Assembly: GCA_000320545.1 (NCBI GenBank)
Contig: ADNK01003163.1
Location: 29,810 to 93,809, forward strand
Direction: 5' to 3'
DNA length: 64,000 bases
From: Bigelowiella natans CCMP2755
Taxonomy: Eukaryota; Protista; Cercozoa
Part shown: in pieces, positions 30,625 through 39,126 of the stretch
Layout of the letters: each line of letters begins with the position of its first letter
Numbering within the stretch: position 1 is the first letter of the stretch
Program-made: the position numbers and the translations under genes
Notes under the pieces: generated by a model
Databases searched by the model: none
Told to the model about the DNA's origin: nothing
What the model saw: the letters and a program-made list of their open reading frames with translations, nothing else

Positions 30625-31351
30625 GTATTATTTTGGGTTGTTTTAACGCTGCTACATGTTGAAGCATTACTTGAACAGCATACACACATAGTAGTAGTAG
30701 TAGTAGTAGTGATGGTGGTATGCACGTTCATGACTCCTCTCCTTGCACATTAAAACACAGACGTTATTACTCTGTTGTTGTTGCCTCTATTATTTGTTTT
30801 ATTTCTCCACATGTCTCATATGGAAGAGCGACAGGACTTCCATAGTTTCCTTTTCTCCTCTTCAACTCTCAACTGCTATTTACTACTCTTCTTGCATTCT
30901 AATAATTGTTTTCTTGCTCAGATTTGCCGCACTGGAGGCCCTTTGTGCACTTGCTTCTAGCAATCAAGAGACATCGCCCATCCTAGCGACTCTCCTAGTT
31001 CCACACGTAATAAAGTGCCTAAGGAGTACACAAGATCAAACCATCGCTTACGAAGGACTGCGAGCGCTCCATGCTCTGCTTGAGGCATGGCCACAAATCA
31101 TCTATATGATGGAGAAAAATGTGGAGAAGAAGAAGGGATTTGAGAAAAGCGCAGCAGACAAAGAAGGAGAAGAAGAGGGATGGACACCCAGTGAGTTGTC
31201 CTCCGTGACTGACAGCCTTAATGCAAGGTTTTCGTTCGATGTTGACGTTGTTTCGCTATGCATGCGCATGCGAGCTGTCATTCAAGCCATCACAGCTGCT
31301 GAAGTTGTTGATGAGAATACAGATGCTTCCACACAGATCATCTTTGAGTAG
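12850..31351 (+). CDS. Very large multi-exon protein: RanBP2-type Zn finger, multiple NHL/beta-propeller repeats, TFIIS-N-like helices, SPRY-like segment, ARM/HEAT-like C-terminus (could be two genes)
   Basis: WACVLCAHLNPLSVSECE|RC matches W-x-C-x2-C-x3-N-x6-C-x2-C. NHL exons include HPMGICADNAHIYVAAAGENRVVVFD, LQLPYDIACDERNLYICDRNNNRLIIWD, FSSPCLIHLDEHYIYVSDYGNCRLQ and GIAVDEQYIYLSGYN. In-phase exons at ~20092 and ~20549 bridge the two halves. Final exon FAALEALCALAS...QIIFE* ends at 31351. True start not resolved. Confidence 0.7.
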
Positions 31352-31726: not shown

Positions 31727-32336
31727 CACACATGCGTGTGGAGCACGCCTCTCATGCACATGGTACATGCCTGATATCGCCTAACCTGATGACGTCACTT
31801 GCGAGCAAATTTCCTTAGTTTGCAATTGCATCCATGCTGTGTGTATGCGAAGCAGCGCAAGCCATAGATTTCTATAGTGGACACAGCAATTCCATGTATG
31901 TATTACGTGGTGTCTATCATTTCTTAGCTGTGCAATGATGCAGGGGCGTAGTTGCGTCATGGACTGTTAATATATTTGACTCGCGATTTTTGATGGAGCG
32001 CCACTAGCGTCGCACGGTCGTGGCGGCACTGTCGCACATGCACACGTCAGATTGCACTTCCAGCTGCAGATGCAGCTAGTGTATCGCTAGATCGTGAAAC
32101 GAGTTTGCTTGCAGATCTGCATCTTTAGATCTCTAATCTTTTCTGCGCTGACGACTGCTGAAGCTCGACTACAAACTACGTGTCGCATGTATGCGTACAC
32201 CGCACCCACATTCTAACCATCATCCCAACTTTGTCATGAGGTGCACATACAAGCAGGCCTGTAAGCTTGTAATTGTACATGTTTCACCGTGTCGACAGTC
32301 TGCCCGCCTGTGTGTCATCTATCAACTAGCAGTACG

Positions 32337-32752
32337 TTTTAGCGGGCTTGCGGTAGCTGCTTAGCTTTTGTGCGCGGGACTGTGCTGATGTCACTGAGTG
32401 TCAACACGCGGTCCTGTGTGCGTTTGAATTGTGTTGATGACTTGTGACTTGCGCTGCATGCATGTGCGCATTGGGTTCCGGCGCATTCGCGAAGATTCTC
32501 GAATCTTCCAGAATTCTCTCGAATTCTCTGGAAGATTCTCGAAGCTTCCGGAATGCTCTCGAAGATTCTGGAAGATTCTCGAATCTTCCGGAATGTTCTC
32601 GAAGCTTCTGGAAGATTCTCGAAGCTTCTCGAAGATTCCCGAAGTTCTGAGAACTTCCATGCGCATGTGCGCAGCGCAGCGTGCAGCACGAGTGGACGTG
32701 CGCATGCTGCGACAGCTCCTTGATCGTGGGTGGCGCGGCCAGACCGCTGACA
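32337..32752 (-). repeat. 3' LTR (416 bp), TGTCAGCGG...CCGCTAAAA
   Basis: No difference from 38092-38507 found on base-by-base reading. Confidence 0.95.
32486..32653. promoter_or_regulatory. Heat-shock element (nGAAn) array in 3' LTR
   Basis: GAA recurs every 10 bp, 17 times (32491-32651). 12 of the 15 decamers in 32491-32640 are perfect GAAnnTTCnn, with an unbroken perfect run at 32561-32643. Confidence 0.85.
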
Positions 32753-32761
32753 CGCCCCCAT
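32753..32761 (-). other. Polypurine tract (ATGGGGGCG) abutting the 3' LTR
   Basis: G-rich tract immediately 5' of the LTR TG on the element strand. Confidence 0.7.
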
Positions 32762-33097
32762 GGACGTGGTGACCACGATCAGAGTGCTGATGTGCACGTG
32801 CCATTTCTGCCATGGTGACAGAACTTTTGCACGGTGCTGCACATGGACGCCATTCCCAAAGGTTTCGGAGTCCGAATGGTTGGCAAAATTTTGCCGACCA
32901 AACATCGCACCACCAGACGCCTGAAACTCTGTGCAGAGGCACAAAATTCCCAGGCTTGCAACTGGGCAAGGTGCCATGGGCATGGTGCACTCCGAAATCG
33001 GCAGGAAAAATTCTTGCCTGACTGGGCAAGGTGCCACCATTTCGGTACGAACTGGGACTTGTCCAAAAAATTAATTTTTTAAACGACACCAGTGTGC

Positions 33098-33170
33098 TTC
33101 CAGAAAAAATTCTGGAATCCCTCACGTGCTTCCAGAAAACATTCTGGAACATTCTGGAACATTCTGGAAC
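33098..33170. promoter_or_regulatory. Second HSE cluster in the element's internal 3' non-coding region
   Basis: (ATTCTGGAAC)x3 at 33141-33170 gives six alternating nTTCn/nGAAn pentamers. Additional TTCnnGAA pairs at 33098, 33110 and 33130. Confidence 0.7.
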
Positions 33171-33811
33171 ACCGATCTGGTTTCCCATAGTCAGGTCCCC
33201 AAATTTAGGAACTTCGATCGACCGTGCTTTTAACTCTTCACCTTGCCCCACCTCTTGTGATGAGGCGAGCTACGTACACGTCCACGTCCCCCAATGGAGC
33301 TCTTCCCTGAGAGACGAAATTGCGGGCTGGGCTCCAAATACTGTTGGCTGGCTGGGTTGCAGCCATGCCAGATCGAGAAGGAATGCCGAAGAGAATACAG
33401 TCTGCCTTCGTGGGTCTGAAGGCATCATACTCTGGTCATAGCGACATTGTTCTTCCACACCTCCACACAGGGAAGGCAGTTTTTTTCTGTCTTATTTATT
33501 TTTAATTTCGTAGGTATCTCGTAGTATATAGCCTTATATCTTGTTCTTGTTTTGTAGGTATCCTGTCTTTGTTCCACATTCGCCCCCATGATTGTGCAGT
33601 GTCTGGAAGACAGACACTGTGCAATTATATAATCCATAGCGTAATTTACATTCGCCCCCATCGGAGCTGTGCACATAGCTGTGCATATAGTCCATAGTAA
33701 GATACGCAAGGAAAGGTACACACATATAAAGATGTGTGCCATTAAAACCTTGCAGCCTATATGTTCATATGTTGTAGGTTTCTAGATGGACGTGGGGCTT
33801 TTATAGGGCGT

Positions 33812-36532
33812 CTAAGCGGACGTGGGGCCGACAAGGCGAGGGAGCTTGTAAGGTAGAGCCTTTGTTGTTATTTTTCTTTTTCTGGTGCCTTGTAGCATGA
33901 TGGTTAGTTTTTCTCTGTATGATATAGGGAACAAGAAATCACAGTGTTTCTTGTTGCTAGGTCCTGGTAGAGCCTTGGTAAGTATATCAGCGGGATTGTC
34001 CTCCCCAGGTATTTTGTTTATGCAGATCTGCTTGGTTTGATAGTTATCACGAACATTGTGATATTCTATCCTTATGTTCTTGCCTTTCTGTGTGAATCCA
34101 GGCTTGGCTGCAATGGAGATAGCTGCTTGAGAGTCACAATACACAGGTACAGGGTTCGGTATTTTCATTTTTAACTCCTGTAGTAACTGAGTGACATACA
34201 CTAACTCTCTGCATATATCTGATAATGCTATGTACTCAGCCTCGCCACTGGACATAGCAACGACCTTTTGCTTGTTGCTCTTCCAGACAACAGGTGCGTT
34301 GCTTAGCGATATGAAATATCCTGAATATGATTTACCCGTTTTCTTGCAGGTCTTCCAGGAAGCATCGACGTAGGCTTTAAGCTCAGGTTTGGACGCTGCT
34401 TTAAAGGTAATTCTTTTGTCCTTTGTGTTGACCAGATATTGTAGTAAGCGCACTGCAGCGATGTAGTGTATAGTTCTAGGATCTTGACTGTAGGAAGCTA
34501 GACGAGATAGAGTGTAGCAGATGTCTGGCCTAGTAGCCACCGCTGCATACATTGCTGCTCCTATGATGGATCTGTATGCCTTCTGATCTACTTTTTCATG
34601 TTCCACGTATTCGTCTAACTTTGATCCTGTTATCATTGGTGTTTTTGCTCTTTTCGTAGGCGTGATATCATACTTCTGGGCGAGTCTGGTGAGGTAATCT
34701 TCCTGCGATATCCAATAGTTTCCCTCATTGTCGCTACCAACTCTTATGCCCAGTGTTTTCTTTAGCTCGCCTTCATCGCGAAACTCAAACTTGTCGCCTA
34801 TTCGCTTCATGACAAAGTCCAGGTCTTTCTTATCTTGATATGCTATGCATATGTCATCCACGAAACATGACAATATGATGATTCTTCCTTGTCTGTGCAT
34901 TATCATTAGGCAAGGATCGGAGTAAAGCTGGACGAAGCCAATGGCGTTGAGATGCTCGAGCAAGGTAAGGCTGAATATTGCACTTGCTTGTGTCAGCCCA
35001 TAAATGCTTTTATTTACCAGTAGGGCTAGTGGAAGGCCACTGTTGTATAGCCGGATTTCATCAGGTGTCTTCGGCTTCCACCCTTTAGGTATTTCCATGT
35101 ATACTTTACAGTCCATCTTTCCAGTTAGGAAAGCTGTAAGTATATCTATCCCGTGTAGTTTTAGCTTGAGGATAGATGCTATGGCTAACATTATCCGAAA
35201 ACTATTTAGGGACAACGTCGGGGAATAAGAGAAGAAGGAGTCTTCTCCCGGGATCTGCGTGAACCCTCGCGCGACCAGCCTTGACTTATACCGAATGGTA
35301 TAGTCTACATTTATTTTCTTCTTGAATACCCATTTAGATGTAACGAAATTTGTATCCTTAGGTCGCACTACCAGCGTAAACGTTCCAAGTTTTCGAAGCT
35401 GGTGCAGTTCCTCTTCCGTAGAAGGTATCCAATGCTTCTTATCATCTCCTGTGATTGCATCGTCATACGTCTTAGGAAGGTCCTCGATCTCATGTACTGA
35501 TGGAGCTTTTATATTCATCAGGCGGTCGTAATAGCTACCAAGTATTCCGTAACGAATACCAGGTACTCCCCTATTTTCTCTATTCGACCTTCGAGGCTTA
35601 CTTTTTGCTTTTGTTTCAGGCCCACCATCCTCTGGCAACTCGTCAGTTGCACTGGATGGTTCGGGGGCGTCCGCGTCGGCAGGACCTTCTGGATAAAGGT
35701 ACGCCAAAGCCGAATCACTAACTTTGTTTCTCTTCAGCGAAGGAAACTTAAACACTGTGTGGTACCATTTAGTTACACGGACTCTTTTAATTTTCAGCGT
35801 CTTCGTGGCGACGAGAAAAGTACCAAATCTATCGTCATATCCCAACATACGTACGTATTCACCTCTAGCACCCATACCACCTGCAGGTCGGAGTTCCTTG
35901 TCAATGTGGTTTACTCCGATGCATCCCCAGGTAGTTAGATTCTTTAGATTTGGTTGCTCATGGTGCAGTAGTTCTTTAGGCGTTTTTCTACCAGGTGTGC
36001 TGCGATGTGAGGTGACGTTGTGGAGATATGCTGCAGTCTGAGCTGCGTAGGACCAGTATCCGACCGGTAAGCGTGCATGTTCTAACATAGCTCTTGTTTT
36101 CGCCATGATAGTCTGTATGTGACGCTCGGACATTCCATTTTGCTCAGGTGTTCGGGCGGTGCTAGGAACCCATTTTATTCCTTCGGAGGTGAGCCAGCTA
36201 TGTAGCTTTGCGCTCATATATTCACCTCCACCATCCGATCTGAATTCGTCTATGCTTCCACAACCTGGAAGCTTTCTGATGTGCTTTATGAACTGTATGG
36301 TTTTCTGCGTAACTTCGCTTTTCTTTCTCAAGAGCTCCAAGGTAACCCACCTTGTTCCTTCATGTACGAATATTACGAAATACTTGTAACCATCCATGCT
36401 GTTAGGCATGGTCTTTACATCAGAGTGAATTCTATTCCACATCCGGTTTTTCTTGTGGATAACAGGTACACATTTTTGTTTCTTTTTGACAGCATCGTTC
36501 TCAATCTTTGCTTTATTCCGATGCTGTTTCAT
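33812..36532 (-). CDS. pol: Copia pol: integrase core, reverse transcriptase, RNase H (integrase HHCC N-terminus missing)
   Basis: IN D-D-E: IHSDV, FRSDGGGEY, PEQNGMSER. RT: KSRLVARGF, SIYGLTQA, CFVDD. RNase H: YVDASW, SSGEAEY, CDSQAAI, NPADILTK. Confidence 0.95.
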   Translation of the reverse strand: MKQHRNKAKIENDAVKKKQKCVPVIHKKNRMWNRIHSDVKTMPNSMDGYKYFVIFVHEGTRWVTLELLRKKSEVTQKTIQFIKHIRKLPGCGSIDEFRSDGGGEYMSAKLHSWLTSEGIKWVPSTARTPEQNGMSERHIQTIMAKTRAMLEHARLPVGYWSYAAQTAAYLHNVTSHRSTPGRKTPKELLHHEQPNLKNLTTWGCIGVNHIDKELRPAGGMGARGEYVRMLGYDDRFGTFLVATKTLKIKRVRVTKWYHTVFKFPSLKRNKVSDSALAYLYPEGPADADAPEPSSATDELPEDGGPETKAKSKPRRSNRENRGVPGIRYGILGSYYDRLMNIKAPSVHEIEDLPKTYDDAITGDDKKHWIPSTEEELHQLRKLGTFTLVVRPKDTNFVTSKWVFKKKINVDYTIRYKSRLVARGFTQIPGEDSFFSYSPTLSLNSFRIMLAIASILKLKLHGIDILTAFLTGKMDCKVYMEIPKGWKPKTPDEIRLYNSGLPLALLVNKSIYGLTQASAIFSLTLLEHLNAIGFVQLYSDPCLMIMHRQGRIIILSCFVDDICIAYQDKKDLDFVMKRIGDKFEFRDEGELKKTLGIRVGSDNEGNYWISQEDYLTRLAQKYDITPTKRAKTPMITGSKLDEYVEHEKVDQKAYRSIIGAAMYAAVATRPDICYTLSRLASYSQDPRTIHYIAAVRLLQYLVNTKDKRITFKAASKPELKAYVDASWKTCKKTGKSYSGYFISLSNAPVVWKSNKQKVVAMSSGEAEYIALSDICRELVYVTQLLQELKMKIPNPVPVYCDSQAAISIAAKPGFTQKGKNIRIEYHNVRDNYQTKQICINKIPGEDNPADILTKALPGPSNKKHCDFLFPISYREKLTIMLQGTRKRKITTKALPYKLPRLVGPTSA

Positions 36533-37908
36533 CCTTTCTTGGGCTGACTAGTCTGTTTAGAGAGATCACATTGCCTGCAGCTTCTTCAGAGTACAAAGCT
36601 CCTTGTAGAACAATTTTGTGCATCTTTCCTTGCTTGTTTTTTGTAGTTAGTTTGACGTCGCCTGCATAATTCACAAAGAATCCTGTCCCATCTTTGCCAA
36701 CTTCTATGTATCGTGGTTGAATAGGTTTCAACTCGTTGAAGAAGTCGCGGTCGCAGAAGAAGTGGTTGTTGGCTCCGCTGTCGAGAAGGATCAAAGGCTT
36801 ATGGTTGTACTTCAGCGTTTGCAGGTAAGAATTGTCGCGTGCCATCTTATTAATGTAAGAGGGTCTTTGGGAAGGGGAGCCATGATCAATAAAAGAATAG
36901 TGTTTTCCTTTGTTCTGCTTGCCTTCATCTCTCATCTTGTTTCTGCATTCCTTTTCCCAATGTCCTTTCTTGCCACAGTAATGGCATTTTGTTCTTTTCT
37001 TTAAGTTCAAGAAATAGTCTTCTCTCTTTTGCTTCTTGGAATTGTCTTGATATGCTTCGCTGTTGTATCTGTTCTTTCCCTTTTTGAATTTCCTCTTGTA
37101 GGTCTTCAGCTGACCTGTAAGTTCGTTTAGCCTTTTCTCCAAGCCATCGTACATCTTCACGTATTTGTGTTCTGCACTGGTGTGTCCTGCATGTTTCTTT
37201 GAAGGTCTCTGCCCGTCATCTAATGATCGGGAGTTTATGTGGGAGCGGATCATGTCCACTGCAGAGTCGAAGGTAACATCTTTCTTGTTGTTGATGACTG
37301 TAACTATAGTCTCGTATTTTTCGCTAGGTACAAGTCCTCGAAGTAGAGTGGCAAGCGCTTGGTTGTCGGAGTACCCTTCGTGCTGTGCCCGAAGTCTTCT
37401 GATCGTCGAGTCAAGGTCAGAATGATACTTTGTGAAGTCTCCATTGTACTGACCCATGTTTATATCACTTAGTTTCGAATAAAGTTTCCTGACGGCTACA
37501 GGATTGGTAGGCTCGTACTTCTCCAGCAAGGCTGCTAAGGTAACTGCTACGTCTTTGGGTTTTCCTTCGAGTAGATCGAAGAATTTGTCAGGAAGGGTAG
37601 CAGTGAGGAAGAATCTTCCTCTCTTTCTTTTGTTTATCTTTTCTTGTGATCCTCTTCCTTCAGGTTTGGGATTGAGGATATCGAATTGCTCCGGGGATAG
37701 CTTGAGTACTTCTCGTCGGTGAGCGGGGTCGGTGCGTACATTGACTTCTGTCACCTTTCCTTCTATTTCTATGTTGACATTGAAGCATGATTCCAAATCC
37801 GCTGCTTCAAAGGCAGACATTAGCTTGTACATGTAGGGCTTGTAGTTGCTACCATCGTACTTGAGGGTGAAGTTTTTTTAGTAGGGAGTCTATCTGCTTT
37901 TCTGACAT
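36513..37908 (-). CDS. gag: Copia gag + aspartic protease (1-nt frameshift in the homopolymer at 37873-37879)
   Basis: Zn knuckle CHYCGKKGHWEKEC and protease LLDSGANNHF...NVISLNRL. Removing one base from the 7-nt run joins ATG 37908 (MSEKQIDSLLKNFTLKYDGSNYKPY) to the 439-aa ORF and restores the copia-like DGSNY N-terminus. Confidence 0.9.
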
Positions 37909-38080
37909 GTTGTTTCGTTCCTATTTTCTTTGTTTTTCAGTGCTTTGGAGGCTTGACCGAAGATTGGCTGAGGGAATGCTGTTGTCGCTTTCAGTTCCTT
38001 CTTCTGGAAGGATGTAGCTGAAGGGGGGTGGGGGGTTGCTTGGTTCTTTTCTGAGTTGGTTCTCTAGCAAGTCCTCTTGA

Positions 38081-38091
38081 GGCTCATAACC
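38081..38091 (-). other. Primer-binding site GGTTATGAGCC (tRNA-iMet anticodon-arm / half-tRNA type)
   Basis: Directly abuts the 5' LTR end and matches the GGTTATGRGCC PBS class used by Drosophila copia and yeast Ty5. Confidence 0.9.
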
Positions 38092-38507
38092 TTTTAGCGG
38101 GCTTGCGGTAGCTGCTTAGCTTTTGTGCGCGGGACTGTGCTGATGTCACTGAGTGTCAACACGCGGTCCTGTGTGCGTTTGAATTGTGTTGATGACTTGT
38201 GACTTGCGCTGCATGCATGTGCGCATTGGGTTCCGGCGCATTCGCGAAGATTCTCGAATCTTCCAGAATTCTCTCGAATTCTCTGGAAGATTCTCGAAGC
38301 TTCCGGAATGCTCTCGAAGATTCTGGAAGATTCTCGAATCTTCCGGAATGTTCTCGAAGCTTCTGGAAGATTCTCGAAGCTTCTCGAAGATTCCCGAAGT
38401 TCTGAGAACTTCCATGCGCATGTGCGCAGCGCAGCGTGCAGCACGAGTGGACGTGCGCATGCTGCGACAGCTCCTTGATCGTGGGTGGCGCGGCCAGACC
38501 GCTGACA
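38092..38507 (-). repeat. 5' LTR (416 bp)
   Basis: Direct repeat of 32337-32752, followed on the element strand by the PBS. Confidence 0.95.
38241..38408. promoter_or_regulatory. Heat-shock element array in the 5' LTR (probable U3 promoter)
   Basis: Same GAAnnTTCnn decamer array as 32486-32653, offset by 5755 bp. Confidence 0.85.
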
Positions 38508-39126
38508 GTACGTGCATCCGCACTGCTGACACAACCTGCTTGTGGCAGTCTAGCGGTGCTTGCTGTCAACAATGCAGAGAGTGGCTCGCGAACTCATCGC
38601 ATTCTAGCATTATATTGTCACAGCATCGCATGGGATGACGACTCAAACGCGAGAAATGTTGCTGCCGGCTTATTACACTTGATCGTTGTGCATGATGCTC
38701 TATCGCAAGAATTACGCTAGCAGCCTCGCTCGCGCCATGCAGTGCTGTCACCGTGCATGTGATTGTTGTTGGTCGTGTGGGGGTACGTCGTCTATTGGCT
38801 TGACGCGCTACTACATAAGGCTGGTAAGCGGGCAGAGAAAAACGCACGTTGTGTGCCTTCGATTCTGCATAGTTTGTGCTGTGGTGTACCAATTAAAGGA
38901 GGCAGCATCAATGCTATAATGTCCTAACGACATGAAAGCTTCTTAAAACATAAGCTCCATCATCATCATCATCATCATCATTATTATCATCACATGTATG
39001 ATAGAGCCACATGGGACTCAAGATGTATTAGAATACACTGTTAATATTTAACAACCCATTTATCATCATGTGTTCTGGATGAAGAACTTCAGCAGTAAAT
39101 CATCTATTTTAAAATGATGATGACTG

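Follow-up and report, generated by a model that had tools for sequence, protein, structure and literature searches.

A young Ty1/copia family of the rhizarian alga Bigelowiella natans carries a long, phased array of heat shock elements in its LTRs

A retrotransposon in the genome of Bigelowiella natans carries within each of its LTRs an array of motifs that resemble heat shock elements (HSEs), which raises the question of whether the element has placed its transcription under the control of the host heat shock factor (HSF). The window that we analyzed is a 64,000-nucleotide stretch of contig ADNK01003163.1 from strain CCMP2755. A preliminary description of this DNA had proposed a young copia element with identical LTRs, an intact target site duplication (TSD) and a strongly stress-inducible promoter. 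Here we asked what the element is, how well the array is conserved within its family, and how the array is best explained.

The ends of the element are as had been proposed. The LTRs, at 32337-32752 and 38092-38507, are 416 bp each and identical at 416 of 416 positions, and they are flanked by a 5-bp TSD, GTACG, at 32332-32336 and again at 38508-38512. A plus-strand placement was discarded, because the minus strand accounts for the ORFs, the primer binding site (PBS) and the TG at which the LTR begins. In element orientation, 32337-32752 is therefore the 3' LTR, with the TSD at 32332-32336 on its 3' side, and 38092-38507 is the 5' LTR, with the second TSD on its 5' side. The minus-strand reading of the 3' LTR is TGTCAGCGG...GCTAAAA, so that the terminus is AA where CA is usual. 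Next to the 3' LTR, at 32753-32763, a putative short polypurine tract is assigned by its position (minus strand, ..ATGGGGGCG). The PBS, at 38078-38091 on the minus strand, can pair over 14 nt with the anticodon stem-loop of the host's initiator tRNA-Met, as checked against the tRNA-iMet gene (L078, 280-351). Drosophila copia and yeast Ty5 prime by a half-tRNA mechanism that uses the anticodon stem-loop of this initiator tRNA. The B. natans PBS likewise pairs with that stem-loop and not with the tRNA 3' end, which predicts half-tRNA priming here as well; this likeness concerns replication, not regulation.

Two minus-strand ORFs make up the coding region of the window copy. ORF1 (36513-37832) encodes a copia-type gag and a Pol beta-barrel (protease) domain, and ORF2 (33812-36532) encodes an integrase core, an SH3-like domain, an RVT_2 reverse transcriptase and the C-terminal part. 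Given this domain order, with integrase before reverse transcriptase, the RVT_2-type reverse transcriptase and the copia-type gag, we assign the element to Ty1/copia. Together with the identical LTRs, the 5-bp TSD and the tRNA-complementary PBS, the domain order agrees with the young Ty1/copia element of the preliminary description. Full-length sister copies of 6.5 kb contain the same domain families in a single 1470-aa ORF (Retrotran_gag_2, 95-213; Pol_BBD, 364-447; rve, 598-693; RVT_2, 948-1198). Comparison with these sisters revealed a 349-bp internal deletion in the window copy, with its junction at 36544-36547 (minus strand), which had been missed before. The deletion takes out approximately residues 444-560 of the 1470-aa polyprotein, from the end of the protease to the N-terminus of the integrase, and shifts the frame between the two. 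The window copy thus does not encode an intact polyprotein and is defective, while intact 1470-aa copies exist in the family. RNA contigs contain the bases absent from the window copy, in loose ends located at 36545 and 36547. A programmed frameshift joining ORF1 and ORF2 was ruled out, since the sisters have a continuous ORF and the window copy lacks the 349 bp.

The window copy is a recent insertion from an active, young, multi-copy family. At least 17 LTRs share at least 99.5% identity, and the two LTRs of a copy differ by 0-1 mismatches in five of the nine full-length copies. The 5-bp TSD is exact in eight of the nine, with a 4/5 match in L038. There are at least two LTR subfamilies with many identical copies, the second having an LTR of 358 bp. 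The publications found in our literature search do not describe this copia family.

Within the 3' LTR, the array spans 32486-32657, and an identical array occupies 38241-38412 in the 5' LTR. It had been estimated at about 40% of the LTR; its 172 bp in fact make up 41%, with a 10-bp period, at about LTR positions 96-268 of 416 in element orientation, again close to the earlier placement. There are 32 in-phase nGAAn/nTTCn pentamer slots, from the TTC at 32486 through the GAA at 32641, followed by two shifted GAAnTTC dyads. Perfect pentamers fill 29 of the 32 slots and form runs of 17, 6 and 5, and the 17 phased GAA at 32491+10k and the unbroken run of 17 pentamers that had been reported were both recovered. 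The three imperfect slots, at 32516, 32526 and 32556, read CTC for TTC; these T-to-C changes are the sole core changes among the units, all others being in the spacers. The array therefore conforms to the canonical HSE, which requires a minimum of three contiguous nGAAn pentamers in alternating orientation. As an HSE array of textbook form, it would offer space for about 10 HSF trimers per LTR, the capacity suggested earlier. Tandem Repeats Finder (TRF) assigned it periods of 10, 20 and 40 bp, period 40 with 89% matches.

Such runs are otherwise scarce. The 57.7 kb of the window beyond the element has only three perfect runs, of 3 pentamers each. Genome-wide, a 6-pentamer pattern gave 254 matches versus 0 for the reversed control, and nearly all among the matches listed belong to this copia family. 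One 6-pentamer HSE lies outside transposable elements, at C273, with no recognizable gene within the 2 kb examined. The element also has a second, internal HSE cluster at 33138-33171, in the interval from the pol stop codon to the 3' LTR, with 6 perfect pentamers (GAACATTCTG repeated). Eight of the nine full-length copies have 6-8 pentamers in this cluster, and L041 has 3; the eight include L040, a TpA-erased copy with ~88% LTR identity to the reference.

Each of the 25 distinct LTR variants, the most diverged at 78% identity, has 16-29 perfect pentamers. The variants differ chiefly by 10-, 20- or 40-bp units gained or lost, and in one copy, L039, the two LTRs are themselves unequal (398 vs 418 bp). 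Pairwise diversity was 0.047 for the cores, 0.181 for the spacers and 0.09-0.13 for the LTR flanks, so that the GAA/TTC cores are ~4-fold less variable than the spacers, a contrast that is inflated by ambiguous register in the alignment of repeat units. TpA-erased copies of the family are present in the genome. The TpA-erasing hypermutation of this genome does not explain the conservation of the cores, because the array contains no TpA and diversity was unchanged after TpA columns were dropped. In most variants, a CCAAT motif immediately follows the array.

The host genome does encode HSF-type DNA-binding proteins, as stress control of the element through the array would presuppose. One of them, of 289 aa, scores 97.7 bits to PF00447, the HSF DNA-binding domain, and matches the DNA-binding domains of human HSF4/2/1 at E 2e-21; its recognition helix is SFVRNLNMYGF, followed by a coiled-coil-like stretch. 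There is a second HSF locus, and the HSF DNA-binding domains lie at C1696:16706-16978 and C2910:58530-58934. Upstream of 16 HSP70/90/20 genes (24 kb), we counted 29 HSE-like triplets, defined as having at most one mismatch, versus 11.6 ± 3.5 expected; 29 triplets were reached in 0 of 200 simulations. In the window background, HSE-like triplets occur at chance level. Perfect 3-pentamer HSEs were present at only 1 of the 16 chaperone upstream regions, a point against HSF control of the array, and the enrichment is limited to the relaxed motif.

We consider it reasonably likely that the LTR array is bound by HSF and serves as the main enhancer of the element, coupling its transcription to stress. 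Host HSF trimers would bind the array cooperatively, up to about 10 per LTR. The array lies where U3 is expected, and the copy in the 5' LTR is the one expected to precede the site where transcription of the element begins; transcription would then respond to heat or proteotoxic stress, as it does through the smaller cluster of ONSEN.

ONSEN (ATCOPIA78) of Arabidopsis thaliana has inverted contiguous nGAAn motifs in its LTR that are bound by HSFA2 and required for heat activation, and clusters of 4-6 nGAAn in COPIA LTRs give HSFA2-dependent heat activation (PMC5059998, PMC13602373). The B. natans element is also a Ty1/copia with contiguous inverted nGAAn motifs inside the LTR. However, the 49-bp cluster of ONSEN comprises four to five units, compared to ~32 in-phase units over 172 bp here, a cis-element about 6-fold that of ONSEN. 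The B. natans element further differs in its 10/20/40-bp tandem organization, its second internal cluster and its rhizarian algal host. We regard its design as ONSEN-like on a much larger scale, with predicted HSF binding and heat activation. In the Brassicaceae, TERESTRA, COPIA37 and ROMANIAT5 are evidence for a recurrent emergence of HSEs in COPIA LTRs, in part through duplication of a proto-element (PMC5059998). The changes in unit number among B. natans LTRs suggest a duplication route of this kind, but the Brassicaceae elements have at most ~6 nGAAn per cluster, with no long phased array among them. The pentamer number per LTR is far above that of the stress-responsive transposons described in the literature cited here. 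Among the nearest relatives that we retrieved, none has such an array, and the related LTR L076 has in common only the part downstream of it. The lack of arrays in these relatives fits a lineage-specific gain, and we infer that the array originated independently of ONSEN.

Other systems are similar in single respects. SmTCL of Symbiodinium microadriaticum is a heat-activated Ty1-copia for which heat induction was measured, in a paper that makes no mention of heat-shock elements or promoters (PMC5776459). Both hosts are marine algae with recently expanded copia families; for SmTCL there is measured induction, whereas for the B. natans family there is a clear cis-element read from the DNA. Human satellite III is a long tandem array bound by HSF1. 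Its units are degenerate GGAAT repeats, in contrast to the strictly phased inverted array found here. Caenorhabditis Helitrons are described as HSE-bearing repeats that spread or concentrate HSF sites (PMC6927752). Neither case concerns an LTR promoter: Helitrons are DNA transposons, and satellite III is a satellite.

Many yeast HSEs are bound by HSF in the absence of stress, and the array might similarly be a constitutive strong enhancer or open-chromatin module, occupied by HSF of unstressed cells or by a different factor with TTCnnGAA specificity. Transcripts of the family are indeed present: probable RNA runs from four separate studies, with culture conditions unstated, yield contigs that cover the element in full with very high word depth, although these contigs are unstranded, were compared over a 6000-base stretch, and have a depth that is not a measure of expression. 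Because the runs of four studies cover the element, its expression is not obviously stress-limited. The CCAAT motif after the array and the rarity of perfect HSEs at host chaperone genes would also suit a constitutive module. Nevertheless, basal transcripts are compatible with strong induction, HSE-like sites are enriched at the chaperone genes, and the array motif is an exact match to the HSF consensus, and we think it unlikely that the array is constitutive.

It is less likely still that the array is a neutral minisatellite, an HSE-resembling unit of 10, 20 or 40 bp that grew by slippage or unequal exchange while hitch-hiking on an active element. Such growth would account for the higher-order 40-bp periodicity and for a unit number that varies among copies, even within L039, and expansion copies the motif automatically. 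Expansion by 40-bp units, which multiplies the motif without selection on each unit, is also a point against the HSF-dependent enhancer that we prefer. Against neutrality, the cores are far less variable than the spacers both within and between variants, all LTR variants have kept the array despite 9-13% divergence of the flanks, both currently successful subfamilies carry arrays, and a second, unrelated HSE cluster is conserved within the element. The strong predicted fold of the array (-85.2 kcal/mol vs -58.2 ± 4.6 for shuffles, z -5.9) and its ~73% match to the reverse strand would agree with an action as nucleic acid, in which hairpins at the 3' end of the genomic RNA affect RNA stability, packaging or small-RNA silencing. 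This we regard as very improbable, because any palindromic HSE array has self-complementarity automatically, and conservation tracks the GAA/TTC cores and the 5-bp phase, not compensatory pairing.

In the RNA contigs, the 14 best-supported splice joints are all antisense to the element, which counts against the preferred reading, with its predicted sense transcription from the 5' LTR. An antisense coding gene was ruled out, as the exons between the antisense introns, checked singly, have stops in all frames. Since the array is dyad-symmetric and an HSE cluster is located just inside the 3' LTR, the HSF-dependent enhancer of the preferred reading may also drive this spliced antisense RNA. A bolder version, which we hold to be doubtful, is that the array is an HSF-dependent bidirectional super-enhancer, such that heat or proteotoxic stress fires sense genomic RNA from the 5' LTR together with an antisense RNA that is non-coding and multiply spliced. 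If this were true, with the antisense RNA coming from the 3' LTR and the internal HSE, one stress signal would set both the transposition bursts of the element and their restraint.

Scattered LTRs would, if HSF-responsive, bring adjacent genes under heat control. One such neighbor of the window copy had been described as an NHL gene about 1 kb away. The plus strand there has an ORF with its end at 31351, separated from the LTR by 986 bp. Its identity as NHL was not confirmed: ORFs in the flanks gave no match to NHL families in Pfam, and only faint HEAT-like matches came from the last exon, which has its end at that position.

If the array is functional, this family would stand as the clearest non-plant example of a retrotransposon capturing the host heat-shock pathway. 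A marine alga for which warming is relevant would have gained a predicted source of temperature-triggered mutation together with new heat-responsive promoters; our literature search found no heat studies of this alga. The array has an expandable tandem form, and its unit number differs between near-identical subfamilies, making the relation between enhancer copy number and transposon success directly testable. How this genome restrains the copia family can also be approached through its TpA-erased copies and the spliced antisense RNA.

The element at 32337-38507 of the window is bounded by 416-bp direct repeats, the 3' LTR at 32337-32752 and the 5' LTR at 38092-38507, which a repeat search and direct alignment found to be identical at 416 of 416 positions, with the target-site duplication GTACG on the flank of each. 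All long ORFs between the LTRs lie on the minus strand. Pfam assigned a copia-type gag and a Pol beta-barrel domain to ORF 37832-36513 and an integrase core, an SH3-like domain, and RVT_2 to ORF 36532-33812, indicating that the element reads from high to low coordinates. Its preliminary description as a young copia retrotransposon with identical LTRs and an intact target-site duplication was thus borne out. In element orientation the LTR begins with TGTCAGCGG and ends with GCTAAAA; its 3' terminus (32337-32340 and 38092-38095, minus strand) is therefore AA rather than the usual CA, a boundary that the 5-bp target duplications of nine copies define. Ahead of the 3' LTR is a short stretch of purines. 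The primer-binding site (38078-38091), which adjoins the 5' LTR, is a 14-nt complement of the anticodon stem-loop of a host tRNA-Met with an initiator-type T-loop (tRNA locus L078, 280-351). It is of the same type as in Drosophila copia and yeast Ty5, which use half-tRNA priming from the anticodon stem-loop.

Sister copies are 6.5 kb long and contain one 1470-aa ORF (gag, 95-213; Pol_BBD, 364-447; rve, 598-693; RVT_2, 948-1198). The window copy, at 6171 bp, is missing 349 bp at ~36545, where two filler nucleotides occupy the junction. Because this deletion, which takes out ~residues 444-560, shifts the frame, two overlapping ORFs are seen, and the window copy is defective. Given 0 differences over 2 x 416 sites and a published base rate of 3.5e-10 for each site and generation (10.64898/2026.01.13.699255), we infer that the insertion is younger than about 1e7 generations.

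The LTR contains an array of heat-shock elements (HSEs; contiguous inverted nGAAn/nTTCn pentamers) at 32486-32657 on the + strand, corresponding to LTR positions ~96-268 in element orientation and 41% of the LTR. Its 32 pentamer slots, in which TTC and GAA alternate, are spaced by exactly 5 bp between a first TTC at 32486 and a last GAA at 32641; 29 are perfect and the other three are CTC. Up to 17 pentamers follow one another unbroken, 17 GAAs are spaced at 10 bp, and two shifted GAAnTTC dyads close the array. These values agree with those first described (~40% of the LTR, ~100-267 nt into it, 17 phased GAA, a run of 17). TRF reported periods of 10, 20, and 40 bp, with 89% matches at 40 bp. 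A six-pentamer pattern had 254 matches in the 91.4-Mb genome, compared to 0 for a reversed control, and the 57.7 kb of the window outside the element held three runs of three pentamers and none longer; the array is thus not a chance pattern. Nearly all of the six-pentamer matches listed belong to the family of the window element.

Among these matches, the sole perfect six-pentamer HSE outside the family (L081, G000 C273:59315-59342) is situated downstream of an ORF, and the 2 kb examined there contained no gene that could be recognised. Directly after the array is a CCAAT motif (ACCCAATGCG, minus strand; 32460-32480 and 38215-38235) that is kept in most LTR variants, and CATGCGCA-type motifs occur on both sides of the array.

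A genome-wide search for LTR copies, as the preliminary description had proposed, located the LTR at at least 40 places, 17 of them at >=99.5% identity. Each of the 25 distinct LTR variants, the most divergent at 78% identity, has kept the array, with 16-29 perfect pentamers, and the variants differ chiefly by whole 10-, 20-, or 40-bp units. We compared nine full-length copies, eight with exact 5-bp target duplications and one (L038) with a 4/5 match. In five, the LTR pairs have 0-1 mismatches; a sixth, L041, has identical 368-bp LTRs. In the seventh, L039 (G000 C2046), the LTRs are 398 and 418 bp and differ solely by two units (20 bp) of the array, indicating that array length changes on a short time scale. 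A second subfamily of at least 15 copies has a 358-bp LTR with a shorter array and the same primer-binding site; most of these LTRs are mutually identical.

Pairwise diversity among 14 non-redundant variants was 0.047 in the pentamer cores, 0.181 in the spacers, and 0.09-0.13 in the LTR flanks, although the core/spacer contrast overstates selection, since repeat units aligned out of register still match in their cores and not in their spacers. A second HSE cluster (33138-33171), in which GAACATTCTG is repeated to give six perfect pentamers, sits in the ~1-kb stretch from the pol stop to the 3' LTR. Of the nine full-length copies, eight have 6-8 pentamers there and L041 has three; at the level of sequence, retention of the cluster is independent support for HSE conservation.

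Two full-length copies with ~93% coding-region identity to the window copy, L038 (C873) and L040 (C485), contain GTA to GCA changes at antisense splice donors, TTAT to TCAT in the primer-binding site, and GCTAAAA to GCTGAAA at the LTR end. Such changes are typical of the TpA erasure of this genome, indicating that some family copies were hit by hypermutation. TpA frequency in the whole element is ordinary (0.053 per base); the LTR has three per 416 bp, and TpA-targeted hypermutation would leave it almost untouched. Core conservation as an artefact of this process was ruled out, as the array has no TpA and removal of TpA columns left the core/spacer contrast unchanged.

The nearest protein relatives in a large protein collection are 39-49% identical. 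No HSE array was found on the three relatives' contigs examined, one of which has 1.77-kb LTRs, so that the array appears to have been gained within this lineage. A related element, L076 (G000 C1119:123748-126765; locus positions 1356-1518), resembles the family (~85% identity) only over LTR positions 272-416, the final 145 bp, and the primer-binding site; where the array would stand, and in the interior, its sequence is unrelated. A module boundary where the array ends downstream is consistent with this arrangement, and L076 may have arisen by a U3 swap or as a chimera.

Heat regulation as originally suggested calls for a heat-shock transcription factor (HSF) in the host, and the genome encodes an HSF DNA-binding domain at two loci or more. 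In a 289-aa ORF this domain matches those of human HSF4, HSF2, and HSF1 (E 2e-21), with the recognition helix SFVRNLNMYGF kept and followed by a coiled-coil-like stretch. We scanned upstream of 16 HSP70, HSP90, and HSP20 genes. A perfect three-pentamer HSE was present at one of the 16, and triplets with at most one mismatch numbered 29, compared to 11.6 +/- 3.5 expected from composition (reached in 0 of 200 simulations); triplets in the window background were at chance (17 versus 15.3). Host chaperone sites are looser than those of the transposon. Together, the HSF loci and the enrichment of relaxed triplets indicate that the canonical HSE probably operates in this alga.

The window stretch was present in 20 public runs, 14 of which (four studies, one organism) contain 73-79% of its words. 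From each study we compared the contigs of one run (four runs in all) with window 32250-38249; such contigs give no strand, start, end, or level for unspliced sense RNA. They cover the element end to end, and loose contig ends at 36545 and 36547 continue into bases that the window copy lacks, indicating that most of the RNA comes from full-length copies. That the runs contain RNA is evident from splice joints, of which 55 were reported. The 14 best-supported canonical joints are all GT..AG on the + strand, antisense to the polyprotein, with a good consensus (AG/GTAA ... YAG/G); they define at least 14 introns of 55-253 nt within 33713-37940, seen across the four runs. We regard the antisense RNA as non-coding because the exons between these introns, checked singly, have stops in all frames. 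The second HSE cluster might serve this RNA. The family is thus transcribed without any known stress.

The array itself was as first described, and its interpretation as a heat-inducible promoter is partly supported. We consider it probable that the array is an HSF-bound, stress-coupled LTR enhancer: the host HSF would bind the array, which would then couple LTR activity to stress. Coverage of the element in runs of four studies with no known stress is what a constitutive enhancer would also give, and this is a less likely alternative. It is rather unlikely that the array is a neutral minisatellite, since its cores are less variable than its spacers and the second cluster is kept in eight of nine copies. 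A role in RNA structure might be read from the long hairpins into which the array folds (z -5.9), but a palindromic motif repeated in an array will always fold in this way, and we think such a role very improbable.

As a stress-coupled enhancer, the array would belong to a known kind, since HSEs in the COPIA LTR of ONSEN confer HSFA2-dependent heat activation (PMC5059998). In Brassicaceae, COPIA-LTR HSEs arose repeatedly, partly via proto-element duplication (PMC5059998). In ONSEN the cluster comprises five units within 49 bp (PMC13602373), whereas the window LTR has 32 slots within a 172-bp tandem array. Heat-activated copia elements have been reported in Symbiodinium, with heat-shock elements and promoters unmentioned there (PMC5776459), and our literature search found no paper on this copia family or heat study of Bigelowiella natans. 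New here are the scale of the array and its tandem organisation, together with the additional internal cluster and the lineage of the host.

The neighbouring gene had been described as NHL; however, ORF 30743-31351 (+) matches HEAT/importin-like proteins faintly and NHL not at all. The 3' LTR lies 986 bp beyond the end of this ORF, and LTR read-out would run antisense to the ORF.
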